Shown: positions 3 through 36,563, counted from the stretch's first letter. The stretch: DNA of 64,000 nucleotides from IMGVR_UViG_3300046787_000200:62001-126000, one strand, 5' to 3'. Numbers and translations: made by a program. The notes: generated from the sequence alone by a model not told the origin.

Positions 3-563
3 ACCAATTCAGTATTTGACTATTGGAAACACTTTAAAAGTGTACATGTACAAACAAGTATTGATGCTGAAGGTAAAAGAGCAGAATATTGGAGAGACGG
101 TACTGTTTGGGAAGACATACTTACTAATATAAAACTTATTAAAGAAAGCAAAGTTCAATGGTCTATACATAGTGTAATCTCTTGGGCTAATGTTTATAGC
201 TATGTAGAATTAGTTAAAACATTATTACAAGAAAAATTATCACTCGGGTATAATTTTACCATATGGTGCTTAGATGAAAGCCATGAATTTAACTTACAAG
301 AATTACCTGACTTTAAAAAACAAGAAATAGCAAGTATGCTAGATACATTTATTGTAGAGTTAGAAGATGGTAAATTTGGTAGATATTTAGGTGAACCTGT
401 AATAAAAACAAATATAGAAAATATTAAAATGTTTATGTTTGCTAAATCAATACCTATAAATAAAGAAAAATTTGAAAAACATTTCATACTAGATGGTATA
501 AGAAATAAGGATTTCTTTGAGTACTTCCCCGAACATGAAAACATGAGAGAATATATACAATGA
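3..563 (+). CDS. Radical SAM protein, C-terminal part (5' truncated by window edge)
   Basis: Frame open from base 3 (TNSVFDYWKHFKSVHVQTSIDAEGKRAEYWRDG...), with the SID-x-G-x-RAEYWR motif of the downstream paralogues; same frame as ORF 336..563. Confidence 0.85.
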   Translation, partial: TNSVFDYWKHFKSVHVQTSIDAEGKRAEYWRDGTVWEDILTNIKLIKESKVQWSIHSVISWANVYSYVELVKTLLQEKLSLGYNFTIWCLDESHEFNLQELPDFKKQEIASMLDTFIVELEDGKFGRYLGEPVIKTNIENIKMFMFAKSIPINKEKFEKHFILDGIRNKDFFEYFPEHENMREYIQ

Positions 564-1738
564 GTAACACTCTATGCGTATTGCCCTGGATGCATTTAGC
601 CACACACCCAAACGGTGGTGCAAGTCTTTGTTGTCGCAGTAATCACACTGATGCAATTAGTTGGGCAAAGAAAACAGATAGTCACAATCTAGTTATGCTA
701 GATAATGATAGTGTTTCCGATATAATGAACAGCGACAAGTTTGTTGAAGTAAGGCAAGCTATGATTGATGGAAAACGTCCAATTGAATGTGAAGGATGTT
801 GGAGTGATGAAGATAAAGGCATTAAAAGCAAACGACAATATGAGAATGAGCGTTGGGCACACATTATCCCTAAACTTGAAAAATCAGCGAAACTACAAGA
901 CATTAATTTAATATATGTGGAACTACGTTTGGGTAATGTGTGCAACAATGCCTGCTTAACTTGTAACAGTTATAGCAGTACTAAGTGGTATCCAGATGAA
1001 AAGAAGATATCAAATGATTTACCTTGGTTTCAACTACGACCAATGGAAAACTTTAAGTGGTTTGAGAAAGAAGAATTCTACTATGACTTAGCAAACAAAA
1101 GTAAGTCTGTAGAAGAAATCTATATCAACGGTGGCGAACCTACAATGATTAAGGCTCACTTTGAATACTTAAAGCACTTGATTACATTGGGTACAGCACA
1201 GAATGTTCACTTAGTTTATAGTTTGAACATGATGGATATACCAGACAGATTGATTGAGTTGTGGAAAGATTTTAAACAAGTTACAGTTAATGCAAGCATT
1301 GATGATTTAGGTGAACGTAACTATTATATTCGATATCCAAGTAAGTGGGAAGAAACAGTTGCAAGTATAGATAAATTAAATAAACTATCTAATGTCAATT
1401 GGCATGTAACACAAACTGTTAGCATACTAAACATATATCATTTAGCAGAATTTGGACATTGGCTTGAGACAAACTACAACAAGACACCTCATCATAATTA
1501 TGTACTGTACCCTGATTATTTGAGCATTGCGGCATTGCCCGATTATTATAAAGAAGAATTACGTAGTCATTATTCAAATAGATTACATGAATGGCAACGT
1601 AAAGATTTGTTTAATAAATTGCATGAGCCTTACCAACCCGACTTGCTAAAGAAAGCAAAAGAGTTTATACTAGCAGTTGACAAAGCACGTGGATTAGATT
1701 ATAAAAACTATATACCGGAACTAAAAGACATACTATGA
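560..1738 (+). CDS. N-terminal twitch-domain radical SAM protein
   Basis: CVLPW...LCC...CEGC twitch cysteines; CNNACLTC (CX3CX2C); GGEP. Confidence 0.9.
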   Translation: MSNTLCVLPWMHLATHPNGGASLCCRSNHTDAISWAKKTDSHNLVMLDNDSVSDIMNSDKFVEVRQAMIDGKRPIECEGCWSDEDKGIKSKRQYENERWAHIIPKLEKSAKLQDINLIYVELRLGNVCNNACLTCNSYSSTKWYPDEKKISNDLPWFQLRPMENFKWFEKEEFYYDLANKSKSVEEIYINGGEPTMIKAHFEYLKHLITLGTAQNVHLVYSLNMMDIPDRLIELWKDFKQVTVNASIDDLGERNYYIRYPSKWEETVASIDKLNKLSNVNWHVTQTVSILNIYHLAEFGHWLETNYNKTPHHNYVLYPDYLSIAALPDYYKEELRSHYSNRLHEWQRKDLFNKLHEPYQPDLLKKAKEFILAVDKARGLDYKNYIPELKDIL

Positions 1739-3021
1739 TACCAATTATACCAGACAAAATTAAAGACTCATTCTGTTCAGCTAAGTGGCTGATGGCTACT
1801 ATGCACTTTGGTATGGGTGAAAATCATAGTTGCTATCACCCACCTATTCATCGCTGGAACTTAGAAGATGTAAAACGTGATCCTAGTATGCTACATAATA
1901 CACAGCATAAGATTGAACAACGCAGACAGATGATGAATGGCGAGAAGCCAAAAGAATGTTACTATTGCTTTGACATGGAAGCAATCAATCCAGATGTTAT
2001 TAGCGACCGTAAACGTTTCACTAACGAACACTATGCCATTGAACGTAGACAAGAATTGATTGACGCACCGTACAATAAACACGTTAATCCTAGCTATTTA
2101 GAGTTGAGTTTCAGTAATGTATGTAACTTTGGTTGCAGTTATTGCAGTCCAGGACAGTCTAGTAAGTGGGAGAATGAAGTACGTAAGTATGGTAGTTACC
2201 CAGTAGAAGATCCTACTGTACATGCTGATAAGATGCATGATATGCTTCCGGAAGATGATAACCCATACATTGATGCATTCTGGAAGTGGTTACCTGATGC
2301 ATACAAAGACTTGAAGTACTTGCGAATTACAGGTGGTGAGCCATTAGCCACACGTAACTTTATGAAGTTGCTAGACTTTGTTGCAACAAATCATAACCCT
2401 AATCTTACATTAGTTGTTAATACAAACTTGTGTGTACCAGATAAGAACTTAAACATGTTCTTTGAGAAGGCAACAACATTACTAAATGCTAAGACTATTA
2501 AGGGTTTAGAAGTGTATACTAGTATGGATACATGGGGACCTCAAGCAGAATACATACGTGATGGGTTAGATATTACACGTTGGGAAGCAACAGTACGCAA
2601 AGTTAGCACAACGTTTCATGTACCAATTCGTGTGATGGTTACATTCGGATTGATGAGTATCTTTAACTTTCAAACGTTTGCAGAAAAAGTTATTCAGATG
2701 CGCAGTGAAGGTATCGATATTATGTTTAATATTGCTAGACTAGTTGATCCTAAACAGTTTGACTTACGTATATTACCTGACTATTGTGATAAGTATTTTA
2801 CTAAGATGAATACGTTTATTGTTGATAACGGTCAAATTGCGAATGTAGAACGTGAAACATGGCAAATGGTTTATGACTTTTGGAAAGCACGACATGAAAC
2901 TATGACAACCGAAGACCGTGAATGGAGAAGAACTCAGTTTGCTAAATTTATTAGTGAGTATGATAAACGTAGGGATAAGAGTTTTGAAGAAAACTTTCCG
3001 GAGATATCAGGTTGGATTTAA
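1735..3021 (+). CDS. N-terminal twitch-domain radical SAM protein
   Basis: CSAKW...SCYHPP...CYYC; CNFGCSYC; GGEP. Confidence 0.9.
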   Translation: MIPIIPDKIKDSFCSAKWLMATMHFGMGENHSCYHPPIHRWNLEDVKRDPSMLHNTQHKIEQRRQMMNGEKPKECYYCFDMEAINPDVISDRKRFTNEHYAIERRQELIDAPYNKHVNPSYLELSFSNVCNFGCSYCSPGQSSKWENEVRKYGSYPVEDPTVHADKMHDMLPEDDNPYIDAFWKWLPDAYKDLKYLRITGGEPLATRNFMKLLDFVATNHNPNLTLVVNTNLCVPDKNLNMFFEKATTLLNAKTIKGLEVYTSMDTWGPQAEYIRDGLDITRWEATVRKVSTTFHVPIRVMVTFGLMSIFNFQTFAEKVIQMRSEGIDIMFNIARLVDPKQFDLRILPDYCDKYFTKMNTFIVDNGQIANVERETWQMVYDFWKARHETMTTEDREWRRTQFAKFISEYDKRRDKSFEENFPEISGWI

Positions 3022-4202
3022 GTAAATATAAAAATTGTAGAGCACATAAGCAATGGATTTTCATAAGCAATAATCCTAAACCTTATAGACCTTGTTGTTG
3101 GTTTCGTACGGATATCACGGCTGAATCATATGAGGAATATTACAGTAAACTAGAAACATTAGACATAGAAAAGAATTGTCAATACTGTATTAAAATGGAA
3201 GAACAGGATGGAGGAGAGTGGAGTCCTAGAACACTCTTTGAAAGCCAGACACCTGAAGATACTTTTGTAATTACAGCTAGTATCGATAATGTTTGTAACT
3301 TAAAATGTGTCACTTGTAATCCAATCAATAGTACTCAAATAGCAGCCGAGCTAGAACCAAAAGATATACATGCTAAATGGCTTAAAAAAAGATATCTAAA
3401 AGTGTCAAACCAATCAGCATCTAAAGTTGAGTTTATACAAGAAGCCGTGTCAACTAATAATTTTGATAATATCAAAGTAGAAATATTAGGTGGTGAGCCA
3501 TTAATTAATCCAAAAGTATTTGAATTATTAGATTGGTTAGCAGAACACCATACAGCAAGTAAAACCTCAGTTGCAATAACTAGTAATGGTACTACATACA
3601 CAGACAAACTACTAACATATATTGATAAATTTAAACGAGTGGGAGTTCAATTTAGTATTGATGGCACTGGAAAACATTTTGAATATTTACGATTCAATTC
3701 AGTAGAAGATACAATGAATGAAAACATCGATACGTTTTACAATAACGGATTACCTATCAGTTTTAATTTCACAATATCATGGATGAATATGCTGAATTTT
3801 GCAGACACATACAATTGGATGCAAAATAAATATCCAAAATTAAACACAATATTAATAACTAAATTAGAAAAACCTGATGGATATTGCGTAGAAGTATTAC
3901 CTAAATATGTTAGACAAGCAATATATGAATCAGAACTTAAACGGTTCGATAAACCTATAAATGACATATTTGCAAATTCAATAAATTTATACAAACAACA
4001 TACTACTATTGGCGGAACAGATGACTTTAACATGCCGATGTTATTGAACGGTGTTAGCAGTATGTTTGAGTTAGACATAAAACGTAAAGCAGATCACTAC
4101 CCAATATTCAAAAAAGAATATGATTTAATTATGAGCTATATGTCACCTGAACAAACACAGTTATTAACTGATACTATTTTAAAATATAGGAATTCACTGT
4201 GA
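3012..4202 (+). CDS. Radical SAM protein with short N-terminal twitch domain
   Basis: PYRPCCWF...CQYC; CNLKCVTC; GGEP; TTG start overlapping upstream gene. Confidence 0.88.
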   Translation: MDLSKYKNCRAHKQWIFISNNPKPYRPCCWFRTDITAESYEEYYSKLETLDIEKNCQYCIKMEEQDGGEWSPRTLFESQTPEDTFVITASIDNVCNLKCVTCNPINSTQIAAELEPKDIHAKWLKKRYLKVSNQSASKVEFIQEAVSTNNFDNIKVEILGGEPLINPKVFELLDWLAEHHTASKTSVAITSNGTTYTDKLLTYIDKFKRVGVQFSIDGTGKHFEYLRFNSVEDTMNENIDTFYNNGLPISFNFTISWMNMLNFADTYNWMQNKYPKLNTILITKLEKPDGYCVEVLPKYVRQAIYESELKRFDKPINDIFANSINLYKQHTTIGGTDDFNMPMLLNGVSSMFELDIKRKADHYPIFKKEYDLIMSYMSPEQTQLLTDTILKYRNSL

Positions 4203-4246
4203 ATGGTATACGGAACTAAATAAAAAGATCCCGTAATATTATCACA

Positions 4247-5536
4247 ATGTCTATATTAGAAAAAGCCTCTACCAGTAAAACCTTTTGCATATACCCATGG
4301 ATACATCAGTATGTAGGCCCTAAAGGTGACGTTAAACCATGTTGTTTATTCAACCCTAATAAAGATGGTATAGGTAGTCTTAAAGAAAATACGCTTAAAG
4401 AAATATGGAACAATGACGCAACAAAACAAATGCGTTTAGATATGCTTAACGGAGTCACCATAAAAGGCTGTGAAAAATGTGACAGTCGTGAGGGTATTAT
4501 TGCTGTTCACCGTGATGAAGCAAATAACAATTGGTACTATCAATCTAAAGATATATTAGAACAAACCAATGAAGATGGATCATTGCCCACACATCAATTA
4601 AAATATATTGATGCAAGATTCAATAATCTATGCAATTTTAGATGTAGAACATGTGGCCCTAGATTTAGCACATCATGGAATGAAGATTATCAAGCATTAC
4701 GATCTCCGAATTCGATGAATGAGTTTCCTAAAACACTTATTTTTCCCGGTAACACTAAAGATCAATTATTAGATGAGATATTAGAGCATTTACCTTATGT
4801 CAATCGTATCTACTTTGCAGGTGGTGAACCGCTCATGCAAGCAGAACACTATATAATGTTAGAAAAGCTATTAGAGTTAAAAAATGATGGTATAATTAAT
4901 AAGATGCCAATCATTGTTTATAGTACTAATTTCAGCACATTGCGATTGGGTAATAGATCAATTATTGATTTATGGAAACACTTCCCTACATTGATTCTCA
5001 ATTTAAGTATTGATGGTAGCTATGAACGTGCAGAATATTGGCGTAAAGGTACAGATTGGCAAGCAATTGTTGATAATTTAAAAGAAGTAAAAAACAATAT
5101 ATCACATGCTCAAATTAATATTAATTACACATTGTCATGGGTTAATGCATTTAATTTAACAGAATTGCATAAAGAATGGGTAACACTAGATTATATAAAT
5201 CCAAATAAAATAAATGTCAATTGTTTGGATGACCCGTCGTTTTATTCTTTGAAGTCTATTCCAACATGGAAGAAACAAAGTATTGAACAAAACTTTTTAC
5301 AGCATATTGAATGGTTAAAAAATAATAGACCTAATATGAATAGAAGAATCTATGATAAGACAATTAAGCAATTTACAGATGCAATTAGTTTTATGAATAG
5401 TTATGATTCTGGTAATGACTTTATTCATAAAAGAGAATTTAATGAAATGAATGGGCAATATGACAGAATACGTAACGAAGATTTTTTAAAGGTATTCACA
5501 GAACATATTGACATGCAACAATTTATACAAAAATAA
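4247..5536 (+). CDS. N-terminal twitch-domain radical SAM protein
   Basis: CIYPW...VKPCC...CEKC; CNFRCRTC; GGEP. Confidence 0.9.
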   Translation: MSILEKASTSKTFCIYPWIHQYVGPKGDVKPCCLFNPNKDGIGSLKENTLKEIWNNDATKQMRLDMLNGVTIKGCEKCDSREGIIAVHRDEANNNWYYQSKDILEQTNEDGSLPTHQLKYIDARFNNLCNFRCRTCGPRFSTSWNEDYQALRSPNSMNEFPKTLIFPGNTKDQLLDEILEHLPYVNRIYFAGGEPLMQAEHYIMLEKLLELKNDGIINKMPIIVYSTNFSTLRLGNRSIIDLWKHFPTLILNLSIDGSYERAEYWRKGTDWQAIVDNLKEVKNNISHAQININYTLSWVNAFNLTELHKEWVTLDYINPNKINVNCLDDPSFYSLKSIPTWKKQSIEQNFLQHIEWLKNNRPNMNRRIYDKTIKQFTDAISFMNSYDSGNDFIHKREFNEMNGQYDRIRNEDFLKVFTEHIDMQQFIQK

Positions 5537-5548
5537 CGAGAGACATTA

Positions 5549-6730
5549 ATGGATTTAACACCTTACAAAAATTGCCTAGCATTAAAAAATAGTATTTTTA
5601 TTGCCAACGAAGAAAAGCCATATCGCCCATGTTGTTGGTTTAAAACATATATAGATGCAACAGATGTTGATGACTATAAAAAACAGTTAAGTGAATTAGA
5701 TTTGGAATACAACTGTGATTATTGTATTAAACAAGATCAAGGTGGGCAATATAGCTATAGACAAATGTTTGGTGATCCAAACGAGATGGTTATCACGGCT
5801 TCATTTGATAACATATGCAATTTAAAATGTGTCACTTGCACACCAAATAACAGTACACAAATCCTTGCAGAAAGATTTAAGTTTGATGAAAAAGTTGAAG
5901 CAGAATATGCTAGAAAGTATATCACTGAGGTAGTAGCTAAACAAGCACCTAAGAAAATCGACTTTATAAAAACAACACTAGCAAATGCTAGTTTTAACAG
6001 ATTGCGATTTGATATATTAGGTGGTGAACCATTGATTAACCCAGCCATCTTTGAATTTATGGATTGGTTATCAGATCAACCTTATGCACATAAAACAACA
6101 GTGGCGATTACTACTAATGGAACCACTTACACCGACAAGCTAATTAAGTACCTTAATAAGTTTCAACGTGTGGGAGTGCAAACTAGTATAGATGGTATAG
6201 AAGAAGAATTTGAATATTTACGTTATGGATCATCATTTGAAAATTTAGAACAAGTATGTAATAAATTCTATGCATTGAAAAAACAATATTCTAATTTTGG
6301 TATGGGAACTCATTACACATTATCATGGATGAATTGTTTAAACTTTGCAGAATATTTTAATTGGTCACAAACTAACTACCCTGATATTGAAATTTATGTA
6401 AGTAAGTTACAAAGTCCTGATCATTATTCTATTGAATTATTGTCATTAGAAATGCGAACGCAAATATATAATGAAACAATGAGAAAGATACACACTCCTG
6501 TAAATGCATATTATGAGAAAGCTTTGTTCTTATATAAAGAACATATGTTATCTACAGCGTATGATGAATATAACGAAAAATTATTACAGCACGGCATGTC
6601 TACACTAAACGTTATTGATTATAGACGTAATGCCGATCATAGAAAGATAATTAAAAACTTTGTTAACTTTTTGTCATTAAATAAGAAAAATCCATGGTTC
6701 AACTATGTCATGGATAAAAACCCTAAATAA
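5549..6730 (+). CDS. Radical SAM protein, paralogue of 3012..4202
   Basis: PYRPCCWF...CDYC; CNLKCVTC; GGEPLINP. Confidence 0.88.
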   Translation: MDLTPYKNCLALKNSIFIANEEKPYRPCCWFKTYIDATDVDDYKKQLSELDLEYNCDYCIKQDQGGQYSYRQMFGDPNEMVITASFDNICNLKCVTCTPNNSTQILAERFKFDEKVEAEYARKYITEVVAKQAPKKIDFIKTTLANASFNRLRFDILGGEPLINPAIFEFMDWLSDQPYAHKTTVAITTNGTTYTDKLIKYLNKFQRVGVQTSIDGIEEEFEYLRYGSSFENLEQVCNKFYALKKQYSNFGMGTHYTLSWMNCLNFAEYFNWSQTNYPDIEIYVSKLQSPDHYSIELLSLEMRTQIYNETMRKIHTPVNAYYEKALFLYKEHMLSTAYDEYNEKLLQHGMSTLNVIDYRRNADHRKIIKNFVNFLSLNKKNPWFNYVMDKNPK

Positions 6731-6739
6731 GAAACGAAT

Positions 6740-8056
6740 ATGATAGATAAAAAAATTGAAGATTTATCACCACATTTTTGCAGTGTGCCGTGGCTGCAAA
6801 TACACACTGAACCCAACGGGAAGGTATTTCCCTGTTGCTATTATAGCTTTGATGCAAAGCATGATTTGGGTAATTGGAATAAAGAAAAGCTATCTGACAT
6901 TTTCAATAGTACTAAATGGAATCAACTACGCAAAGATTTCTTAGATGGTAAGAAACCAGACCAATGCACACGTTGTTGGAAAGAAGAAGATTCAGGTTCA
7001 ACTAGTATGCGTCAACGTTTCAATGAAAGATATAGCGATTTCCCTGACTATACAAATCAGAATGGTTACAATAAACTAAAAGATATTATTACATATACCA
7101 ATGATGATGGGTCAGTCGGTGATATAAAATTGGCAACGATTGATTTAATCTTTAACAACTTGTGTAATCTCAAGTGCAGAACATGTGGTCCTGGATTAAG
7201 TACTGGTTGGATCCCTGACCAGATTAAACTAGGTAGATATCAGATTAACCCTACATCATTGATAACAAATGACGGTGTGTTGCATATGCAAGAGGATTTG
7301 GATTATCTGATTGATATGATAGATCCATACACAGAAATACATTTTAGTGGTGGTGAGCCGATGATGCAAGAGGAACACTATCTATTCTTAAAGTTATTAG
7401 TTGAGAAGGGTAAAACTAAAACTAAAATAAGATATAATACTAACCTTACAGTTTATACACTTAAAGACTATAACGCATTTGAAATGTTAAAGCACTTTGA
7501 TAATGTTTTCATTGTGGGTAGTATTGATGCAATGGGTAGTGAAGGTGAATATATACGTAAAGGATTTGATTGGGAGTTAGCTAAAAAGTGGATAGAGACT
7601 GCCAAAGAATATCTACCTAAAGCAGATTATGGAATCAGTGCTGTGTTCAGTTTATTGAACTGTTATGGATCCGTTGACCTACATAGATATATGTGTGAAA
7701 GTGACACGTTCAAAAGACCTGACGGTAGACAATTTGGATTCTATTTAAATACATTACATGCTCCATCACAGTTAAGAACTAAAATATTACCACCTAGCGT
7801 AAAATTAGAAGTAACAGAAAAGATTAATAAGCATTTAGAGTGGTTAGCAGAAACACAAGAACGTGATTTCAACTATGATGTAACAGTAGCACATTGGAAA
7901 GATGCAATTCAGTTTATGAATAGTGAAGATGAGAGTAAGCAATTACCAAGATTTTATGCGGAAACTGAATTGCTAGATGACATTAGAAAAGAAAAATTTA
8001 GTGATGTGTTCCCTTATTTAGATTCAAAAATTAAAGAGTTTTTAGCAAATGAATAA
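6740..8056 (+). CDS. N-terminal twitch-domain radical SAM protein
   Basis: CSVPW...FPCC...CTRC; CNLKCRTC; GGEP. Confidence 0.9.
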   Translation: MIDKKIEDLSPHFCSVPWLQIHTEPNGKVFPCCYYSFDAKHDLGNWNKEKLSDIFNSTKWNQLRKDFLDGKKPDQCTRCWKEEDSGSTSMRQRFNERYSDFPDYTNQNGYNKLKDIITYTNDDGSVGDIKLATIDLIFNNLCNLKCRTCGPGLSTGWIPDQIKLGRYQINPTSLITNDGVLHMQEDLDYLIDMIDPYTEIHFSGGEPMMQEEHYLFLKLLVEKGKTKTKIRYNTNLTVYTLKDYNAFEMLKHFDNVFIVGSIDAMGSEGEYIRKGFDWELAKKWIETAKEYLPKADYGISAVFSLLNCYGSVDLHRYMCESDTFKRPDGRQFGFYLNTLHAPSQLRTKILPPSVKLEVTEKINKHLEWLAETQERDFNYDVTVAHWKDAIQFMNSEDESKQLPRFYAETELLDDIRKEKFSDVFPYLDSKIKEFLANE

Positions 8057-9362
8057 TAATTTTAATCCAGTCGAACTAGCAAAGAACAGTAAAACATTTT
8101 GTATTTTTCCATGGATACAACAATATGTTGGTCCACCCGGTGATGTTAAACCATGCTGTGTATATGACAACAAAGATGAGATAGGTAACTTAAAAGAAAA
8201 CACATTAGCAGAAATTTGGAACAACGATAAGACTAAACAGATGCGTTTGAATTTTCTGAATGGAATAGAAGAACCGGGATGTAGTATTTGCAACAGACGA
8301 GCAGAACTGGGTCATGCACATAAGAATGAATATAATAGAATATTCTTTGATTCTGATGCAGAAATTCAGAAAATAGTAGCAAGTACAAATATAGATGGAT
8401 CACTCGATGAACATAAACTTTACTATATTGATGTACGTTATAATAACTTATGTAACTTAAGTTGCCGTAGTTGTGCTCCGCACTTTAGTACTAGCTGGGT
8501 ATTGGATCATAGAAAGTTGTACAATATACAACATAAAAGAGATAAAGATGATGGATTTCAATTTCCGGGCAAGACTGAAGAACAAGCATTAGAAGAAATA
8601 TTACCGCATTTGGCTACTGCAAAGATGATTTATTTTGCAGGTGGAGAACCATTAATGCAAAAAGAACATTATGAAGTTCTTAATAAGTTGATAGAGTTGG
8701 GTAATACTGATTTAGAAATACGTTATAATACAAACTTCAGCAATCTTAAATTGAAAAAATATGATAACGTAATTGAATATTGGAAGAAGTTTTCTAATGT
8801 GCATGTATATGCTAGTTTAGACGGTAGTCATGCGAAAGGTGAATATTGGCGTAATGGTATAAATTGGGACCAAGTAGTAGAAAACCGTAAACAAATGATG
8901 AAAGAATGTCCGCATGTTAATTTTATGATTTCATATACATTGAGTTGGCCTAATGCATTGAACTTAGTAGAGTTCCACAGAGAATGGGCTGATTTGGGCT
9001 ATTTGAAACCAGAACACATGTTAGTAAACCCATTAGATACACCATCATATTATTGTTTGAAGAATATTCCTGATTGGAAGAAACGTGAAATAGAAGAAGC
9101 GTTGCAGAAAAACATAGCATGGTTGAAATCTTTTGGACAACCTTTTGGAATCATAAGTATGTATGAAACTGCAATTAAGTTTATGTGGGATGATACCGGA
9201 AAATATAGTTATGGTGTTGATGAAAGCTTGAAAGAGTTTAACAAAATAACTACAAAGTTAGATGATATACGCAATCAAAATTTCTATACAGTATATCCAG
9301 AACACATAAACATTAAAAATTATTTGACACAAAACAATTTAAATGTTGAGTTTAATTATTAA
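8049..9362 (+). CDS. N-terminal twitch-domain radical SAM protein, paralogue of 4247..5536
   Basis: SKTFCIFPW...VKPCC...CSIC; CNLSCRSC; GGEP. Confidence 0.9.
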   Translation: MNNNFNPVELAKNSKTFCIFPWIQQYVGPPGDVKPCCVYDNKDEIGNLKENTLAEIWNNDKTKQMRLNFLNGIEEPGCSICNRRAELGHAHKNEYNRIFFDSDAEIQKIVASTNIDGSLDEHKLYYIDVRYNNLCNLSCRSCAPHFSTSWVLDHRKLYNIQHKRDKDDGFQFPGKTEEQALEEILPHLATAKMIYFAGGEPLMQKEHYEVLNKLIELGNTDLEIRYNTNFSNLKLKKYDNVIEYWKKFSNVHVYASLDGSHAKGEYWRNGINWDQVVENRKQMMKECPHVNFMISYTLSWPNALNLVEFHREWADLGYLKPEHMLVNPLDTPSYYCLKNIPDWKKREIEEALQKNIAWLKSFGQPFGIISMYETAIKFMWDDTGKYSYGVDESLKEFNKITTKLDDIRNQNFYTVYPEHINIKNYLTQNNLNVEFNY

Positions 9363-10615
9363 TGGATGAAAAGAAGCTATTTAAAATAAGAGATGAGACT
9401 AGTCCAACTATGTGTTTGGCTAAGTTCCATGAGGCTAGTATTTGGGTTTACTCAGGTAAGATAGCCAGCTGTCACTACACTCCGTTCATACAAGTAGGTA
9501 ATACAGTAGATACATTCTACAATCCTACTGAAAAACGTGAACAACAAAAACGTATGCTTGCAGGAGAACAACCACCTGCATGTGATAGTTGCTGGCGTTA
9601 TGAGAACTTAGGATTGCGTAGTGATAGAACACGTAAGAGCTTGAGCTTCAAGGATCACTTATCAGCAGAAGATTATAAGAATCCTAACTATGTATTCAAA
9701 CCAAAAGCATTAGAGTTAGCTTTTCAAAATACATGTAACTTAGCATGTAGCTACTGTAGTCCACAATTCAGTACAAGCTGGATGAATGATATCAGAGTAA
9801 ATGGTGTTTATCAACAAATCGTTACAGATGATCGTAGACATTATCAAAAAGATATCAATGAAATCAATGAGATGATTGACCCTCCTGACATGACATTGTT
9901 CTGGGAATGGTTTGAAACTGTTGCAACTAGTTTAGAATCTATCCGTGTTTCGGGCGGAGAGCCACTAATGCATGAAGAAGTTTTTCGTGTGTTTGAGATG
10001 ATGACAGAGATGAACCCTAACATTGAATGCGTGATACACAGCAACCTCTGTCAAAAGCCAGTAGTTATGGATAGATTCTTTGATAAGATTAGTGGCTTAA
10101 CTAACTTGCGTATGAACATTAGTAATGAATCTGCAGGTGAAACAGCAGAATTTATACGTGAGGGTATGGTATATACTGAATGGTTAGAAAATATTGAACG
10201 ATTGGCTAATAGTACAGTAAGAGAATTTAGTGTAAGCACAACAGTTAGTGCAATTGCATTACAATCATTAGATCAAATGTATTTGGATATTATTGCTATT
10301 CGTAATCGTAGTAAAGTAAAGCCATATATATCTATCAATATGGTTGATAAGCCAGACTTTCAGGGCTTTGCTTGTTTAACTAGAAGTGAACGTGATTTCT
10401 ATATTGATAAATATACCAAGTTCTATGAATCAATTAACCATGAATTGTTACCAGTTGAACATGAACACTGTGCTAGATTGTTAAAGTTCTTAGATGAAGG
10501 GTTTGTTAAAGAAACACAACCTCAATTGCGTAAAGACAGTGATATCTTTTTTGAACAATATACTAAACGTAGAAACAAGCCAGACAATTTGGCAAAATAT
10601 ATAGGATTAAAATAA
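9362..10615 (+). CDS. N-terminal twitch-domain radical SAM protein
   Basis: CLAKF...SCHYTP...CDSC; CNLACSYC; GGEP. Confidence 0.88.
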   Translation: MDEKKLFKIRDETSPTMCLAKFHEASIWVYSGKIASCHYTPFIQVGNTVDTFYNPTEKREQQKRMLAGEQPPACDSCWRYENLGLRSDRTRKSLSFKDHLSAEDYKNPNYVFKPKALELAFQNTCNLACSYCSPQFSTSWMNDIRVNGVYQQIVTDDRRHYQKDINEINEMIDPPDMTLFWEWFETVATSLESIRVSGGEPLMHEEVFRVFEMMTEMNPNIECVIHSNLCQKPVVMDRFFDKISGLTNLRMNISNESAGETAEFIREGMVYTEWLENIERLANSTVREFSVSTTVSAIALQSLDQMYLDIIAIRNRSKVKPYISINMVDKPDFQGFACLTRSERDFYIDKYTKFYESINHELLPVEHEHCARLLKFLDEGFVKETQPQLRKDSDIFFEQYTKRRNKPDNLAKYIGLK

Positions 10616-11787
10616 TGGAAGAACAGATGTATGATATAAATTGTGTGACGAGATTGCACATTGAGTTATCAAGTAGATGTAATGCTAGTTGCCCTGCATG
10701 TAGTAGAAATCATAGCGGTGGCCCTGTTGCAGAAGATTTAGAACTTACTGAGTTATCAATCGATGATATCAAACGTATGGTTCCAGTAGAGATTGCACGA
10801 AATATAAAAAGTATTAATTACTGTGGCAATGTTGGTGATCCAGGTATGGCACCTGATCTATTAGAAATCATACAATATTTTAGAGAACATTCACCTAAGG
10901 TCGTACAACAAATTAGAACAAACGGTGGAATGCGCAACCCTGAGTATTGGACTAAGTTGGGTAATTTCTTTGCAAGACAAGCAGATCCCAATAATAAGTT
11001 CTTATTTAACATGGCAGGGGTAGTGTTTAGTGTTGATGGATTAGAAGATACTAATCACATTTATCGCAGAGGTGTTAAATGGGAAAAGTTAATTGCTAAC
11101 ATGAGAGCATATAGTGCTACCGGTGCATATGCTATATGGGAGTGGTTGATATTTGAGCACAATCAACATCAAGTTGAAGAAGCAAGAGCATTAGCAAAAG
11201 AATTAAATTTTCAGTTTATTGTTAAGAATCCACTAGGATTCGGTGAATATGATGGTAAAGTTAAGGGCTTATCTGTGTATAACAAAGAAGGTGCGTATGA
11301 GTACTCTATTTGGCCTGCTAATCACAAAGGTCCCAAAGAAGGACCAAACTTTGGTGAGAAAGTAGATTTCACTAAAATGATTAAAACGATTCCTATCATA
11401 AATGAATTCAGTAAAGAATTAGAAAAAACTTCTACAATAAAATGTAAGTCAATTGAACGTAAAGAATCACAAGAAGTTTATATCTCTGCTACTGGATACA
11501 TGCTACCATGTTGTTTCTTGGGAGGTGTATTTGGACAATTTAATAGTTCTTATAGTAGATATCAATTTAATACAATGATTAATGATTATGGATTGGATGT
11601 GTTTAATTTAAACAAACGTTCAATGTTAGAGATAATTAAAGGTCCTGAATTTTCAAAATTCTTTTTAGATGGTTGGAAAGCAGATACGATTGAGAATGGT
11701 AAATTGTTATTTTGTTTAGAAACATGCGGAAATCAATCTGCTATGGATAAATTATATAGAACTAAGATGATAGAGGTATCAAAATGA
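10615..11787 (+). CDS. Radical SAM protein with C-terminal SPASM/twitch cysteines
   Basis: N-terminal CNASCPAC; CGNVGDP in place of GGEP; C-terminal IKC...LPCC...CLETC. Confidence 0.88.
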   Translation: MEEQMYDINCVTRLHIELSSRCNASCPACSRNHSGGPVAEDLELTELSIDDIKRMVPVEIARNIKSINYCGNVGDPGMAPDLLEIIQYFREHSPKVVQQIRTNGGMRNPEYWTKLGNFFARQADPNNKFLFNMAGVVFSVDGLEDTNHIYRRGVKWEKLIANMRAYSATGAYAIWEWLIFEHNQHQVEEARALAKELNFQFIVKNPLGFGEYDGKVKGLSVYNKEGAYEYSIWPANHKGPKEGPNFGEKVDFTKMIKTIPIINEFSKELEKTSTIKCKSIERKESQEVYISATGYMLPCCFLGGVFGQFNSSYSRYQFNTMINDYGLDVFNLNKRSMLEIIKGPEFSKFFLDGWKADTIENGKLLFCLETCGNQSAMDKLYRTKMIEVSK

Positions 11788-12533
11788 GAATAGGTGTATT
11801 TGGTGATAGTTTCGCAGATAGAAACCCATACAATCCAGAAAGTCCCTTTAAGGAAGATGAATCATGGATGAAATGTATGGAAGATTCAGGACATGAAATT
11901 ACTACGTATGGGAAAACTGGTACTTCAACATGGTATTCGTTTCAACAATTCTTAGCACACCATGATCAATTTGATCATGTTATATTCTGTTATTCATCAA
12001 TGCATAGAATACATCATTTGCCAGAAGGACTTGAAGATTTAAGTTTCTTGACCACACCCGATCAACTTTATGAATTGAGAAAAAATAAAAACTTAACTCA
12101 ACGACAAGAATTGGATATAGTAAGAATACTTACAGGTCACGTACCTAACATTAGTACTACGTTTGACTTGTTTGTTAAGCAACATATATTTGATGAAGTT
12201 AATAATCTATGTAGAAATAAAAACATCAAGTTAGTTAATCTACTAACATTTGATGATAGAAAAGAAAAAAATTATTCTATTGACCTAGCGTTAAGAGCAG
12301 GTGATTGTTTATATAACTTATTTGAAGTAAGTCGTAGAGAATTACCTAGTATGGATAGAGTAGATAACAGATGGTGTCATTTATCACACGAATTAAATCT
12401 ATCATTGTCTGTACTATTAAGTCAATCTCTTAACAGTAAAGAATTACGCATTTTAGATTTACGCAAACATCCGGAATTTAATAAAGTTAACTATGATATC
12501 ACCTTGAGGTATATGAATGAGCCAACTACGTAA
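11784..12533 (+). CDS. SGNH/GDSL-like hydrolase or acyltransferase
   Basis: N-terminal FGDSF and late R-x-CH motif. Confidence 0.65.
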   Translation: MRIGVFGDSFADRNPYNPESPFKEDESWMKCMEDSGHEITTYGKTGTSTWYSFQQFLAHHDQFDHVIFCYSSMHRIHHLPEGLEDLSFLTTPDQLYELRKNKNLTQRQELDIVRILTGHVPNISTTFDLFVKQHIFDEVNNLCRNKNIKLVNLLTFDDRKEKNYSIDLALRAGDCLYNLFEVSRRELPSMDRVDNRWCHLSHELNLSLSVLLSQSLNSKELRILDLRKHPEFNKVNYDITLRYMNEPTT

Positions 12534-13263
12534 GATTATCACTTTGGGTGATAGTTTTACGTTTGGACATGGGTGTGCAGACCGTGAATATTACTATGAC
12601 CATGATACTAAAACATTCATAGGTGATCATAGACCTTTTAAAGAAAATATTCCTAGTCAATATTGTTGGCCTACTTTACTTCAGCAACATATGCATGAGG
12701 TTGAAGTTATTAATTTATCGCAACCGGCAAATTCCAATCAGGGACTATTCCGTAACTTATTAACCTATTGTGAAACCAACACAATTAATGAAGGTGATAT
12801 TATCATCTTTAACGGATCATTCCCGGGTAGGATAGACATTGCATCAGGTGCTCGTCCTGAAGTTACTGTTCCTTGGGTCATGGGTTGGGATCACCAATCA
12901 CAAATGGAAAATGAAATTGAATACAATGTTGCTAAAAAAATGTACATAACACATTTATTCAATGATTCAATAGGATATACACAATCATTGTCATCAGTAT
13001 TAGCAACACATGCATTTGCTACAATGTATAAAGCAAAGTATATTTGGTCATTGCCCAATCATGTTTATCCAAAAGAAGTTCTGGATAAACTAAAACCAAT
13101 TAATCATTTACGAATAACAGACTTATGTAAATATGATTTTTCTGGCACTAACACATATGATTTTAACAAAACTTGTTTTGCTCCCGATTATCACGTGAAT
13201 AATTTGGGACATTCTATATACTTGCAAAAACAAATAATCCCCGTCATACAATCCCTTCTATAA
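12517..13263 (+). CDS. SGNH/GDSL-like hydrolase
   Basis: GDSFTFG, NLS-x-P-x-x-SN, DYHVNNLGH. Confidence 0.75.
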   Translation: MSQLRKIITLGDSFTFGHGCADREYYYDHDTKTFIGDHRPFKENIPSQYCWPTLLQQHMHEVEVINLSQPANSNQGLFRNLLTYCETNTINEGDIIIFNGSFPGRIDIASGARPEVTVPWVMGWDHQSQMENEIEYNVAKKMYITHLFNDSIGYTQSLSSVLATHAFATMYKAKYIWSLPNHVYPKEVLDKLKPINHLRITDLCKYDFSGTNTYDFNKTCFAPDYHVNNLGHSIYLQKQIIPVIQSLL

Positions 13264-13271
13264 ATATCGTA

Positions 13272-14621
13272 ATGAATAATAATGAACAAATAGACAATCC
13301 AGACTCTGAATTCGTTGAAAAGAAAGTATTTCCCATACAAAACGAAGCCGCATGCTTGTACAAATGGGCATGGAGTACTATTTTCTTAAGCAGAGGTACA
13401 ACATCAAGTTGCCATAGAGGTCGTCATTGGAGATTGACTGAGGATAACTTCATGGATTTTCATAACCATCACGGTAAATTAGCCGACAGAGAAAAAATGT
13501 CGAGTGGGGAATGGCCTGGTAATGGTTGTGAGTACTGTAGAGATATAGAAAAAGCAGGTGGAACTAGTGATAGATCAGGATTTGTAAATGAATCAATAGA
13601 ACTATTACCACCTGAGTTTGAAGGATATGTACAGCGTATATATGAATATGATACTATCCCGTTAAAAGTAAGTCCTACACTATTAGAAGTTTATTTTAAC
13701 AATGTATGTAATCAATCATGTGTCTATTGCACTCCTGGATTTAGTAGTCAGATTGAACAAGAGGTTCGCAAATACGGGCCTAGCAAGTATAATGAAGATT
13801 ACAGCACATGGCGTCCTGATTCAAAATACGAATTGTATAAAGAAAAGTTTTGGGAATGGATGGCAAAGAATAGTGAGCATGTACAGATATTACAAGTATT
13901 AGGCGGTGAGCCACTATATCAAAAAGAGTTTGAACAATGTTTAGATTTCTTTGACAAGAACCCTAGACCTAATTTAGTATACCGTTCATTTAGTAATCTA
14001 AAACACGATCCTGAAAAGTTTAAAGCAAAGATACAGCGAGTACAAAACTTGATTGATCAAGGTAAATTAAAACGTATGGAAGTTGTATGTAGCATTGATT
14101 GCTGGGGTCCGGAAATTGAATATGTACGTGATGGCTTGATACTAGCCGAATGGGAAGAAAACATGAACACATTGTTAACGACTCCTGGTATGGGAGTATT
14201 AGTTCATGCTACACTTACTGCATTAACGTTGCCTACATTGAATCAATTGATAGAGAAAACAAATGAATGGCGTAAGATAAAAGATACAGTAGGTATCAAT
14301 TGGAATACAGTTGTTAGACCATCAACATTCAATCCATATAATTTTGGTAAATATTTGGCACCGTTTATTGATAGATCGATTGATGCATTAAATTACTATA
14401 GTAACCATGTAGAGAAAGAAAAGTTACAGACACACTTACGTGGTATACAACAACAGTTATTAACTACACCCGCAAATAAAAAAGAAGTTAATGACTTTGC
14501 TAACTTCTTAGATGATATAGACAAACGTAGAAATAGAGATTGGCGAACATTATTTCCGCAAATTGTAGATATTGTAAATATTATAAACAAAGAGGAACCA
14601 GACTATGTTCAAGTGGATTAA
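13272..14621 (+). CDS. N-terminal twitch-domain radical SAM protein
   Basis: CLYKW...SCHRG...CEYC; CNQSCVYC; GGEP; TATAAATA 5 nt upstream. Confidence 0.88.
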   Translation: MNNNEQIDNPDSEFVEKKVFPIQNEAACLYKWAWSTIFLSRGTTSSCHRGRHWRLTEDNFMDFHNHHGKLADREKMSSGEWPGNGCEYCRDIEKAGGTSDRSGFVNESIELLPPEFEGYVQRIYEYDTIPLKVSPTLLEVYFNNVCNQSCVYCTPGFSSQIEQEVRKYGPSKYNEDYSTWRPDSKYELYKEKFWEWMAKNSEHVQILQVLGGEPLYQKEFEQCLDFFDKNPRPNLVYRSFSNLKHDPEKFKAKIQRVQNLIDQGKLKRMEVVCSIDCWGPEIEYVRDGLILAEWEENMNTLLTTPGMGVLVHATLTALTLPTLNQLIEKTNEWRKIKDTVGINWNTVVRPSTFNPYNFGKYLAPFIDRSIDALNYYSNHVEKEKLQTHLRGIQQQLLTTPANKKEVNDFANFLDDIDKRRNRDWRTLFPQIVDIVNIINKEEPDYVQVD

Positions 14622-14709: not shown

Positions 14710-15518
14710 TTCCGCTGAATAATTTATTGGACTCACAAGACTTTAGTGAGGTAATTCCGTATACAAAAGTCGAGCATAAAACATTATCAATTGATGCATA
14801 TACTACTGATTTTGCATCATTTGATGATATGAAATATGCTGAGTACTGGCAAGGAGAGCAGTTCAATTATTTTTATAATAGATATGGATTCAGAGATATT
14901 GATGTTATCCCTGAATCCATAGACATAGGTGCATTTGGTTGTAGCTTCACTGCCGGGTTAGGATTACCGGAACATATGCTTTGGCATAAACTGTTAGGCA
15001 CCTCATCATACAATTTTGGTGTGTCGGGTGCTAGTACTAAATCAGTGTTTGATTTGTTTTTAATAACATCTAAACATGTTAAAATGAAAAATGCTATATT
15101 TTTACTACCAAGTTTAAATAGAGTTCAAATTGCGGCGACAAATCCATTATTGTCCAGAATATCTTATTTGTCAATTGTCCCTTCGCATAAAAGTGAATTA
15201 GCATTAGTACATGGGGTTGATAGTGAGTTGGTATACAAAGTATTACCGGAAGAAGAACAGATAAAAAACTTTAGAAACGATGCATACATCATAGATCATA
15301 TAGCAAAAGAACGTGGTATTAATGTATATCTGTCTACTTGGGACAGTCTTACATATGAAGTATTGGCACAATTAAAATTTACACATTGTACTGTATTGCC
15401 AGTATGGGGTTCTCTCTCACAGGAACAAGCAGAATCAGATTTAGCTAGAGATAAAAAACATCCGGGGCCAATACATCATCAGCAATGGGTTGACAAAATT
15501 AAACATTTAATAAAATGA
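14706..15518 (+). CDS. SGNH-like protein
   Basis: NRYGFRD, FGCSFTAG, NFGVSGAS, ARDKKHPG. Confidence 0.7.
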   Translation: MIPLNNLLDSQDFSEVIPYTKVEHKTLSIDAYTTDFASFDDMKYAEYWQGEQFNYFYNRYGFRDIDVIPESIDIGAFGCSFTAGLGLPEHMLWHKLLGTSSYNFGVSGASTKSVFDLFLITSKHVKMKNAIFLLPSLNRVQIAATNPLLSRISYLSIVPSHKSELALVHGVDSELVYKVLPEEEQIKNFRNDAYIIDHIAKERGINVYLSTWDSLTYEVLAQLKFTHCTVLPVWGSLSQEQAESDLARDKKHPGPIHHQQWVDKIKHLIK

Positions 15519-21648: not shown

Positions 21649-21649
21649 G

Positions 21650-27085: not shown

Positions 27086-27128
27086 TTCGAAGGGTGCTAG
27101 TCACCCTTCTTTTTAATAAGGAAATAAA

Positions 27129-34100: not shown

Positions 34101-34353
34101 TGACGAAGCCAAAACAATCACTTACACAGTTAAAAAACTTAATGTAGGTGATGTTGAAGACCCTGATATTATTGTAGGACAATATATATGGGAGTGGCAA
34201 GAATCTGAAGCAGGTAAATGGATTATGGAAAACTCAAGACCTTTACCTAGTTGGCATCGTAGTATTAATCATGTAACATATGGTTATCAATATGATATCA
34301 GAGCATATCTTACACCTAAACAAATAACTTATTTTGAATTGAAATATAAATGA
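34060..34353 (+). CDS. Hypothetical protein
   Basis: GDVEDPD...GKWIMENS; ends YFELKYK. Confidence 0.7.
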   Translation: MKVMDQLKQLWQSDDEAKTITYTVKKLNVGDVEDPDIIVGQYIWEWQESEAGKWIMENSRPLPSWHRSINHVTYGYQYDIRAYLTPKQITYFELKYK

Positions 34354-35315: not shown

Positions 35316-35499
35316 TCAAGTTTATAGGAAAGTAATAAAATTGCCCTGGAATAAATGGTTTGCGTGGTATCCAGTAAGAGTTCATGGAAAATATACATGG
35401 CTTAAAATTGTGTACCGTCGTAGTCTACTTACATATGTTGATATGGATGATTGGTCACGATATGAGTATGGCACAATATTTGATATAATTAAAGAATGA
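35272..35499 (+). CDS. Hypothetical protein (start uncertain)
   Basis: WNKWFAWYPV...WLK; ATGA overlap with next gene. Confidence 0.6.
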   Translation: MTGSAIQHTGRTNYNQVYRKVIKLPWNKWFAWYPVRVHGKYTWLKIVYRRSLLTYVDMDDWSRYEYGTIFDIIKE

Positions 35500-36560: not shown

Positions 36561-36563
36561 TTG

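Follow-up and report, generated by a model that had tools for sequence, protein, structure and literature searches.

What does a phage do with a tightly packed run of radical SAM (rSAM) enzyme genes, and is the run complete in the sequence in which it was first seen? The window analysed here is a 64,000-nucleotide stretch (IMGVR_UViG_3300046787_000200:62001-126000) of a 352-kb contig from an uncultured jumbo phage. An earlier note, made from the sequence alone, described a tandem array of ten complete rSAM genes and one truncated paralogue, and inferred that together with adjacent SGNH proteins, a carbamoyltransferase and a glycosyltransferase-like protein they form a pathway that tailors a glycan on the virion, DNA or host surface. 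The observation is confirmed and was understated, and every testable element of the reading held up. The array comprises 14 rSAM genes, 13 of them of an uncharacterised type with the auxiliary iron-sulfur domain at the N-terminus. Although no substrate, product or target has been shown, the array most likely edits the sugars of a surface glycan.

Open reading frame calling gave ten complete rSAM genes in the window, each with one CX3CX2C motif, and an open frame that runs off the left edge (Table 1). Spacing between successive rSAM genes is -10 to +44 nt, except for a 1.5-kb stretch that holds two SGNH genes. The paralogue described in the earlier note as truncated is an effect of the window edge, and its gene is complete on the source contig. 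As the note suspected, the array extends to the left, where a short-chain dehydrogenase (SDR) gene and three more rSAM genes of 466, 508 and 521 aa are preceded by a NodS-like methyltransferase gene, giving 14 rSAM genes in about 20.5 kb. Two further rSAM genes lie 20 kb downstream. The phage assignment also holds. Terminase, UvsX, a gp32-like SSB, a helicase and a T4 gp9/10-like protein are present, and TerL is about 50% identical to that of PA5oct/Atu_ph07-type jumbo phages. The host is probably a betaproteobacterium.

Table 1. Features of the rSAM array and associated genes, with positions counted from the first letter of the window; bit scores are against NCBIfam NF033640 (N_Twi_rSAM).
Position	Strand	Feature	Length	Description	Supporting observations
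3..560	+	R0	186 codons (406 aa complete)	C-terminal part of an N-terminal-twitch (N_Twi) rSAM gene, cut by the window edge; complete on the contig at L008 12080-13300	337 bits for the full protein
560..1738	+	R1	392 aa	N_Twi rSAM; part of the conserved core (orthologues down to ~30-40% identity in distant relatives)	350 bits; Cys pattern; synteny; dN/dS 0.05
1735..3021	+	R2	428 aa	N_Twi rSAM of the 4-Cys twitch subtype (single Cys where others have a Cys-Cys pair)	284 bits; dN/dS 0.03
3012..4202	+	R3	396 aa	N_Twi rSAM with a short linker; variable cassette, the closest relative having no orthologue and carrying a 44%-identical R5-like gene at this position	166 bits
4247..5536	+	R4	429 aa	N_Twi rSAM, 46% identical to R7	353 bits; Pfam SPASM at residues 14-79
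5549..6730	+	R5	393 aa	N_Twi rSAM, 45% identical to R3	181 bits
6740..8056	+	R6	438 aa	N_Twi rSAM; N-terminal domain aligns weakly to the BtrN twitch domain	368 bits; AF2 model pLDDT 94; Foldseek finds rSAM cores only
8049..9362	+	R7	437 aa	N_Twi rSAM	357 bits
9362..10615	+	R8	417 aa	N_Twi rSAM, 4-Cys subtype, highly conserved among close relatives	244 bits; dN/dS 0.04
10615..11787	+	R9	390 aa	rSAM in the conventional order (CX3CX2C at residue 22, SPASM-like cysteines at the C-terminus)	Pfam SPASM at 284-350 and Radical_SAM at 16-170; phrog_21308
11784..12533	+	SG1	249 aa	SGNH/GDSL-like protein	GDS motif and invariant His in alignment; profile against GDSL structures
12517..13263	+	SG2	248 aa	SGNH/GDSL-like protein	Alignment and profile as for SG1
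13272..14621	+	R10	449 aa	N_Twi rSAM, 4-Cys subtype	233 bits
14706..15518	+	SG3	270 aa	SGNH-like protein with G-C-S in place of G-D-S in block I	Alignment and profile as for SG1
15515..17020	+	Carbamoyltransferase	501 aa	NodU/CmcH-type	Pfam Carbam_trans_N and Carbam_trans_C; phrog_1601; recurs beside N_Twi rSAMs in RsoM2USA, Azospirillum and many related loci
17029..21312	+	Big	1427 aa	About 11 tandem ~66-aa repeats (motif FDFSWxPD...PYIYxFG) and a C-terminal ~300-aa domain homologous to the upstream U6 family, which has a predicted GT-A fold	U6 model and Foldseek; no Pfam, PHROG or PDB sequence hit
34350..35315	+	SDR		NDP-sugar 4,6-dehydratase/epimerase-like; linked to the array by function only, not by adjacency	Pfam Epimerase and GDP_Man_Dehyd; best NCBIfam match dTDP-glucose 4,6-dehydratase
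35496..36560	+	Aminotransferase		DegT/DnrJ/EryC1-family sugar aminotransferase; ends in TAG, in frame with the next gene	
36561..37553	+	rSAM	330 aa	Conventional order, with a C-terminal Cys cluster	Pfam Radical_SAM 2e-13; Cys map
37510..38514	+	rSAM	334 aa	Conventional order, similar in length and Cys spacing to the preceding gene	Pfam Radical_SAM 4e-13; Cys map

Nine of the ten complete rSAM proteins in the window match NF033640 over its full length, and across the whole array 12 of the 13 N_Twi paralogues exceed the curated cutoff of 170 bits, with R3 falling 4 bits short. All nine have the pattern C-x17/18-(C)C-x26-64-C-x2-C upstream of the CX3CX2C motif, and Pfam places the SPASM/twitch domain at residues ~6-82 in four of them. 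Residues 14-79 of R6 align weakly to residues 169-235 of BtrN, its twitch domain (E=0.018). The architecture is a circular permutation of the usual order, as conventional-order Planctomycetota rSAMs match the same HMM in permuted segments. The paralogues are only 19-46% identical to each other and so span much of the family's diversity inside a single genome. Despite this divergence, all 13 N_Twi paralogues keep the 4 twitch Cys, CX3CX2C, GGEP and other invariant residues, and dN/dS values of 0.03-0.22 indicate strong purifying selection. NF033640 is a subfamily model with only a generic name and no assigned function, comprising about 7,700 clusters at 50% identity, and full-text literature searches aimed at it found no characterised member.

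The array is neither unique to this phage nor previously unnoticed. All 78 related viral loci carry 2-13 such genes, with a conserved core of paralogues (Ra-Rb-Rc) and swappable cassettes. Rb and Rc are in 46 of 48 loci, whereas the other paralogues are in 1-19, and 123 of 353 rSAM ORFs are under 40% identical to any reference paralogue. Two papers noted such cassettes in passing. Radical SAM cassettes were mentioned in the host-recognition cluster of pelagimyophages (Zaragoza-Solas et al. 2020, PMC7029224), and a T4-like marine viral genome was reported with 12 rSAM genes (Nishimura et al. 2017, PMC5332604). As in the present phage, the pelagimyophage cluster is a hypervariable region of a large myovirus that combines tail fibres, GT8 glycosyltransferases and rSAM gene cassettes differing between close relatives. 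Those reports mention the genes in a sentence, without family assignment, architecture or hypothesis, and the present phage is not a pelagiphage.

The neighbouring genes named in the earlier note are real, and the glycan inference is strengthened by further evidence. Three proteins with the GDS motif (with the exception noted in Table 1) and an invariant His have a joint profile that hits GDSL/SGNH structures at E=4e-6. Upstream of the array, two GT8-like glycosyltransferases (U4 and U5; profile against glycogenin, E=2.5e-6) and a GT-A-like protein (U6) lie next to fibre-like proteins, namely U2, with a Peptidase_G2 intramolecular-chaperone (IMC) domain and virion-protein PHROGs, and U3, with 30% Ser+Thr. 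The U6 model is confident (pLDDT 87), and its annotated Foldseek matches in PDB and BFVD are almost all GT-A-fold sugar-nucleotide enzymes, chiefly glycosyltransferases, and include chlorovirus PBCV-1 A64R. The window also encodes two NDP-sugar dehydratase/epimerases. The association is general, as 45 of 49 full-length related viral loci pair the array with GT-A, GT8, SGNH or carbamoyltransferase genes, and the cultured phage RsoM2USA has one Rb orthologue (51% identity) with a carbamoyltransferase two genes downstream. A natural fusion protein (P0363) joins an N_Twi rSAM to a GT2 domain, and its contig holds 6 N_Twi genes, a U6-like gene and 4 further GT2 genes. In bacteria, an Azospirillum plasmid polysaccharide locus holds a distant N_Twi-like rSAM with a carbamoyltransferase, FkbM methyltransferases, a UDP-sugar dehydrogenase, epimerases and a GT, and a 60% GC contig holds an N_Twi rSAM with three GT2, one GT4 and three GDSL genes.

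Several known systems can be compared with this locus. BtrN (2-deoxy-scyllo-inosamine dehydrogenase) and BlsE are twitch-domain rSAMs that act on sugars, and HygY may be a further example. They share with the array an rSAM core plus one auxiliary [4Fe-4S]-type Cys motif (C-x17/18-C...C-x2-C), and BlsE and DesII are among the structural neighbours of the R6 model. However, in the phage proteins the twitch domain is N-terminal, there is no significant sequence similarity outside the motifs, an extra ~120-aa helical C-terminal region is present, and the genes occur in arrays of up to 14. In the desosamine pathway a PLP aminotransferase (DesI) is followed by an rSAM (DesII), and in the second cluster of the window a 4,6-dehydratase-like SDR, a DegT aminotransferase and an rSAM follow each other; the two downstream rSAMs do not reach any equivalog cutoff. 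Bacterial O-antigen or capsule loci, and viral self-glycosylation systems such as that of PBCV-1 and possibly mycobacteriophage virion glycosylation, likewise have clustered glycosyltransferases, nucleotide-sugar enzymes, acyl, methyl and carbamoyl tailoring enzymes, and mosaic, cassette-like evolution. In the phage, tailoring is dominated by rSAM enzymes rather than by conventional epimerases or oxidoreductases. No Wzx/Wzy/ABC export genes, flippase, polymerase, initiating phosphoglycosyl transferase or lipid-carrier gene typical of envelope polysaccharide pathways was identified in the stretches examined.

Other roles have been considered, of which modification of a phage protein is the least unlikely. 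In this view the rSAMs would install epimerisations, cross-links or other radical modifications on a protein such as the Ser/Thr-rich fibre proteins or the 1427-aa repeat protein, a RiPP-like maturation with the sugar enzymes acting separately. Most characterised SPASM/twitch rSAMs are peptide maturases, and many such NCBIfam models give weak secondary hits. Foldseek ranks the peptide-modifying enzymes CteB and anSME as high as the sugar or nucleotide enzymes viperin, DesII and BlsE for the R6 model, and the fold therefore does not discriminate. The repeats of Big are near-identical and rich in Trp, Tyr and Pro, and repeated motifs are typical substrates of multi-turnover rSAM maturases; some cellular relatives are also fused or adjacent to Sel1 or TPR protein-binding repeats. 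However, Pfam reports no RRE or other peptide-recognition domain in the ten complete rSAM proteins of the window, only 4-5 auxiliary Cys are present rather than the 7-Cys SPASM motif, and the short gaps leave no room for precursor-peptide genes. Big ends in a GT-A-like domain, so it looks like an enzyme rather than a substrate, and it is absent from many loci that keep the rSAM core. The GT2 fusion and the recurrent GT, SGNH and carbamoyltransferase neighbours point to sugars.

Synthesis of a diffusible small molecule, such as an aminoglycoside- or aminocyclitol-like compound or a modified nucleotide sugar used as an antimetabolite, is doubtful. The enzyme classes (twitch rSAM, DegT aminotransferase, NDP-sugar dehydratase, TobZ-family carbamoyltransferase, SDR and methyltransferases) appear to overlap those of aminoglycoside pathways (in the island the rSAMs would play BtrN/AprD4/DesII-like roles), and a cyanophage study speculated on “antibiotic synthesis genes” from a similar gene set (PMC12801897). 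No 2-deoxy-scyllo-inosose synthase or other committed scaffold enzyme was seen in the ORFs scanned, though, fourteen rSAMs far exceed any known small-molecule pathway, and the placement beside fibre genes and the O-antigen-like cassette mosaic fit a surface structure better. Hypermodification of phage DNA or its nucleotide precursors, to evade host restriction, is similarly improbable. Jumbo phages often modify their DNA, rSAMs are likely to take part in some thymidine hypermodification pathways, thymidylate synthase and DHFR are in the window, and in one related locus a dCMP-deaminase gene sits directly after the carbamoyltransferase. The thymidylate synthase is nevertheless a full-length, high-scoring ThyA match next to DHFR, as expected for ordinary dTMP synthesis, and no 5-hmdU kinase, DNA glycosyltransferase signature or base-exchange enzyme was found. 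The bacterial contexts are polysaccharide loci, and the island borders structural rather than replication genes.

The explanation favoured here, with moderate confidence, is that the array is the radical-chemistry section of a phage-encoded glycan island at the edge of the tail-fibre/host-recognition module. No member of NF033640 has a known substrate and all of the functional evidence is contextual; the upstream fibre genes may simply be the end of the structural module with the island inserted beside it, and fourteen radical steps on one glycan has no precedent. In the inferred mechanism, the glycosyltransferases build a glycan from host-made and phage-made nucleotide sugars, and each N_Twi rSAM cleaves SAM at its CX3CX2C cluster and abstracts one particular sugar C-H. 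The radical could then pass an electron to the twitch [4Fe-4S] cluster, giving a keto sugar as BtrN does, or take back a hydrogen atom from the opposite face, giving an epimer, for which the extra Cys of the Cys-Cys pair found in eight of the 13 paralogues is a candidate hydrogen donor. The products would then be methylated, O-acylated or de-acylated (SGNH) and O-carbamoylated, with the glycan sitting either on the virion fibres or on the infected cell's envelope. Under this proposal the array is a combinatorial radical toolkit whose many deeply diverged paralogues would each handle a different position or residue, and swapping cassettes would change the glycan, as in O-antigen loci.

The + strand of the window carries ten complete ORFs of 390-449 aa (R1 to R10), each with a single CX3CX2C motif, and an eleventh open frame (R0) that runs off the left edge. 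Successive radical SAM (rSAM) genes overlap by up to 10 nt or are separated by at most 44 nt, with the exception of one 1.5-kb stretch that holds two other genes. Pfam finds the Radical_SAM domain (PF04055) in all ten with E-values from 3e-11 to 2e-4; seven of the ten are above the gathering score, whereas R3, R9 and R10 are below it but carry the motifs. In four of the ten, Pfam also finds a SPASM/twitch domain at the extreme N-terminus, at residues ~6-82. NCBIfam NF033640 ("twitch domain-containing radical SAM protein", N_Twi_rSAM) matches nine of the ten end to end, eight of these scoring 181-368 bits against a curated cutoff of 170 and R3 scoring 166.2, marginally below. R9 scores 44 and is not a member; it has the ordinary order with the SPASM-like cysteines at the C-terminus. 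The nine share the pattern C-x17/18-(C)C-x26-64-C-x2-C ahead of the CX3CX2C. R6 residues 14-79 align to the twitch domain of BtrN, residues 169-235, though only at E=0.018. The earlier note had described ten complete genes and one truncated paralogue, with the auxiliary-cluster cysteines at the N-terminus in nine, and this observation is confirmed in every particular.

The array is longer than the window shows. The window is part of IMGVR_UViG_3300046787_000200, a 352,012-bp contig, and window position 1 is contig position 62001. On the contig the truncated paralogue is a complete 406-aa N_Twi gene, and upstream of it lie a short-chain dehydrogenase, three more N_Twi genes (466, 508 and 521 aa, here Rc, Rb and Ra) and a NodS-like methyltransferase. 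The run therefore holds 14 rSAM genes, of which 13 are N_Twi and one is conventional, and two further conventional-order rSAMs sit downstream in the window. Exactly one CX3CX2C is present in each of the 14 array proteins and in the two downstream rSAMs. R0, Ra, Rb and Rc also exceed the NF033640 cutoff, with scores within the same range of 181-368 bits. The coordinates of the features are summarized in the table.

Features of the array and its surroundings; positions are those of the window unless a contig locus is named.
Position	Strand	Feature
L008 5348-6301 (locus on the contig, 6.4 kb upstream of the window)		U6, GT-A-like protein (predicted fold)
3-560		R0, open frame running off the left edge
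560-14621	+	Span of the ten complete rSAM ORFs, R1 to R10
10615-11787	+	R9, rSAM in the conventional order
11784-12533		SG1, SGNH/GDSL-like protein
12517-13263		SG2, SGNH/GDSL-like protein
14706-15518		SG3, SGNH-like protein
15515-17020		NodU/CmcH carbamoyltransferase
17029-21312	+	1427-aa repeat protein
21279-21671 and 21712-21786	+	tmRNA and tRNA with anticodon CUA
24249-25133	+	Gram-negative porin
25985-28610	+	ATPase followed by a large HNH-endonuclease-family protein
29956-31158	+	GH113-like glycoside hydrolase
35496-37553	+	DegT aminotransferase and the first of the two conventional-order rSAMs of the next row
36561-38514		Two conventional-order rSAMs
41161-41850	+	Class I methyltransferase
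52797-53717	+	Second NDP-sugar epimerase/dehydratase

The genes are old, intact and constrained. Pairwise identity among the paralogues is 19-46%, while orthologues of Ra, Rb, Rc and R1 persist at 35-60% identity in distant phages, so the duplications are old and a recent tandem amplification was rejected. All 13 N_Twi proteins keep the four twitch Cys upstream of the CX3CX2C, the three core Cys, GGEP and several other invariant residues. Against orthologues in three related contigs, dN/dS is 0.03-0.22 for every gene that could be compared, and with the motifs intact a pseudogene graveyard was also rejected. An AlphaFold model of R6 is confident (pLDDT 94), and its core superposes on rSAM enzymes of many functions, i.e. 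CteB, anSME, PFL-AE, viperin, DesII and BlsE. This confirms the fold but does not reveal the substrate class, since Foldseek does not separate peptide-modifying from sugar-modifying relatives. Conventional-order rSAMs from Planctomycetota match an HMM of the paralogues in permuted segments, core first and twitch last. The N-terminal position of the twitch domain is therefore a circular permutation of an ordinary twitch enzyme. A promoter and terminator scan found no more sites than in shuffled sequence, and neither supports nor contradicts a single operon.

Such arrays are a feature of the lineage and of the family. A scan of IMG/VR with Rc returned 106 confirmed matches, of which 80 were kept as 78 distinct loci, and every one of the 78 has 2-13 N_Twi ORFs within ±10 kb. 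The order fibre-like U2, U3, U4, U5, U6, Ra, Rb, Rc, R1 is retained down to ~35-50% identity, whereas what follows varies in number and kind. At 40% identity or better, Rb and Rc orthologues are in 46 of 48 full-length loci and Ra in 33, while the other paralogues are each in 1-19 loci. A third of all rSAM ORFs (123 of 353) are under 40% identical to any of the 14 reference paralogues. Even the closest relative (about 90% identity) has replaced R3 and SG3 with divergent versions. A profile of the 13 paralogues finds 7,715 representatives of 50%-identity clusters at E<=1e-30 among 1.84 billion proteins. Many of the best matches (P0241-P0274) are 770-1200-aa proteins with two or three complete N_Twi modules in tandem, which may be true fusions of neighbouring array genes or gene-calling read-throughs. 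The 100 Atlas clusters nearest to R6 are almost wholly viral. Megablast of the array against 50,697 phage records found no match, and tblastn found N_Twi genes in only a few cultured phages, belonging to two lineages: Vibrio phages K566/K567, with four N_Twi genes, and Ralstonia phage RsoM2USA, with one Rb orthologue at 51% identity. A search with four closer paralogues returned only twitch/SPASM-domain matches in conventional-order rSAMs, which showed the permutation but gave no bacterial N_Twi context, and tblastn of Rb against plasmids found nothing.

Upstream of the array on the contig, U2 has a Peptidase_G2 intramolecular-chaperone domain and hits virion-protein and tail-fibre PHROGs, and U3 is 30% Ser+Thr with almost no charged residues. 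U4 and U5 are paralogues whose joint profile hits glycogenin-1 (GT8) at E=2.5e-6 over positions 5-113, the nucleotide-binding and DXD region. U6 has no sequence-level relatives of known function. It is extremely common in metagenomes, with at least 8,000 clusters at 90% identity, all labelled "hypothetical", of which the top 120 are 82% identical or more; the phage lineage is therefore very abundant somewhere. The U6 model (pLDDT 87) gives annotated Foldseek matches in PDB and BFVD that are almost all GT-A-fold sugar-nucleotide enzymes, chiefly glycosyltransferases, and a D-G-D motif is present in U6. However, the scores are modest (E around 3e-4, TM 0.2-0.35), and the GT-A assignment of U6 and of the large protein rests on this predicted fold. 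PDB sequence searches with the 1427-aa protein, U4 and U6 as single sequences, and with the U6 profile, gave nothing meaningful.

Within and after the array there are three SGNH-like proteins whose combined profile hits GDSL/SGNH structures at E=4e-6, although single-sequence Pfam searches had found nothing. Gly, Ser and His are invariant across the three families, and SG3 has G-C-S in place of the block I G-D-S. The NodU/CmcH carbamoyltransferase has Carbam_trans_N and Carbam_trans_C domains (E=5e-34 and 1e-46) and matches phrog_1601 at E=3e-94. The 1427-aa protein has about 11 tandem 66-aa repeats (FDFSWxPD...PYIYxFGxQW...GATExKY) and a C-terminal domain homologous to U6. The repeats have no Pfam, PHROG, PDB or Atlas relatives; Atlas searches gave only unnamed viral clusters for the C-terminus and nothing above noise for the repeat region. 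The motif recurs once inside the C-terminal GT-A-like domain, so the repeats may be duplicated sub-domains of it. Directly after this gene lie a tmRNA of betaproteobacterial type (RF01850, 106 bits; tag ANDSQFALAA), which suggests the host group, and a tRNA with anticodon CUA, an amber suppressor that ARAGORN calls "Pyl". Only 2 of 53 major ORFs in the window end in TAG.

Further along the window lie the GH113-like hydrolase, a dTDP-glucose-4,6-dehydratase-like SDR, a DegT sugar aminotransferase, the two extra rSAMs, a methyltransferase and the second NDP-sugar epimerase/dehydratase. The DegT aminotransferase ends in TAG, and one codon later, in the same frame, comes the ATG of an rSAM gene, giving 686 codons if read through by the phage's own suppressor tRNA. 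This geometry is conserved in all 22 relatives examined, but the stop is TAG in 14 and TAA in 8, so read-through cannot be obligatory; it could be translational coupling or an optional aminotransferase-rSAM fusion. The window also encodes a Gram-negative porin (PF13609, E=1e-22), and strong matches to an ATPase (phrog_1297) and a large HNH-endonuclease-family protein (phrog_1314). The rest of the window is ordinary jumbo-myovirus content, with TerL about 50% identical to PA5oct/Atu_ph07-type phages.

The link of the rSAMs to sugars is inferred from several genomic contexts. At least one GT-A-like, GT8-like, SGNH or carbamoyltransferase gene lies within ±10 kb of the core rSAM gene Rc in 45 of 49 full-length related loci. 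RsoM2USA keeps just the Rb orthologue, with a carbamoyltransferase two genes downstream. One family member (P0363) is a natural fusion of an N_Twi rSAM to a GT2 domain (PF00535, 5.6e-17), and its 29-kb contig interleaves six full N_Twi genes with a U6-like gene and four more GT2 genes. A 60% GC contig, presumably cellular, places a Sel1-fused N_Twi rSAM among three GT2 genes, a GT4, three GDSL proteins, B12-rSAMs and TPR proteins. On an Azospirillum brasilense plasmid, a distant full-length relative (121 bits, below cutoff) sits with a carbamoyltransferase, FkbM methyltransferases, a nucleotide-sugar dehydrogenase, epimerases and a glycosyltransferase. These are independent contexts with the same partners. 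The bacterial distribution of true N_Twi members was sampled only through three contexts.

With moderate confidence, we propose that the island builds and tailors a glycan and that the N_Twi enzymes are position-specific sugar C-H activators. After hydrogen abstraction by the 5'-deoxyadenosyl radical, the substrate radical would either be oxidised through the twitch cluster to a keto sugar, as in BtrN, leaving a ketone open to transamination, reduction or elimination, or be quenched from the opposite face, giving an epimer. Eight of the 13 paralogues have a Cys-Cys pair where the other five have a single Cys. We speculate, by inference only, that the extra thiol is the hydrogen donor of epimerases and that the single-Cys group are dehydrogenases. 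The methyltransferase, SGNH proteins and carbamoyltransferase would then decorate the hydroxyl groups. The position next to fibre genes and the cassette-like turnover suggest that the glycan is exposed and under diversifying pressure, and it could sit either on the virion fibres or on the infected cell's envelope.

Other explanations appear less likely. Modification of a protein is unlikely, although it is kept alive by the peptide-maturase neighbours in fold space and by the striking repeat protein. The N_Twi proteins have only 4-5 auxiliary Cys rather than the seven-Cys SPASM motif of RiPP maturases, Pfam reports no RRE or other peptide-recognition domain in the ten complete rSAM proteins of the window, gaps of 44 nt or less leave no room for precursor ORFs, all equivalog scores are far below their cutoffs, and the repeat protein ends in an enzyme-like domain. 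A diffusible aminoglycoside-like product is more doubtful still; the enzyme classes overlap, but no scaffold-forming enzyme was seen in the ORFs scanned. DNA hypermodification is similarly improbable, as the thymidylate synthase looks ordinary and the cellular contexts are polysaccharide loci.

A more far-reaching version of the glycan hypothesis, possible but tentative, is that the array is a combinatorial "radical glycan editor", in which a set of position-specific twitch rSAMs would epimerise, oxidise or deoxygenate sugars after they have been built into a polymer or attached to a fibre protein, as the carbohydrate counterpart of proteusin/RiPP tailoring. Cassette exchange among the thousands of subfamilies would let abundant environmental jumbo phages diversify a virion or host-surface glycan in an arms race over adsorption, superinfection exclusion or grazing.

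The family is catalogued (NF033640) but unnamed as to function, and literature searches aimed at it found no functional study. The phenomenon has been mentioned in passing in two papers, one of which concerns a T4-like marine viral genome with 12 rSAM genes (PMC5332604). The finding is therefore not categorically new, but is a very large, well-preserved example of an unexplained and evidently widespread system, to which the present analysis adds the family assignment, the permutation, the core/cassette structure, the GT fusion and cultured model phages. Two cultured phage lineages carry small versions of the system and provide tractable entry points: RsoM2USA, with one core rSAM plus a carbamoyltransferase, and K566/K567. 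N-terminal-twitch rSAMs form a very large family that concentrates in arrays beside glycosyltransferases in uncultured large phages, and proteins of this phage lineage are abundant in metagenomes. If these enzymes edit sugars, they are an unexplored reservoir of C-H functionalising carbohydrate chemistry, and they would also be a new way for phages to build or disguise surface glycans.
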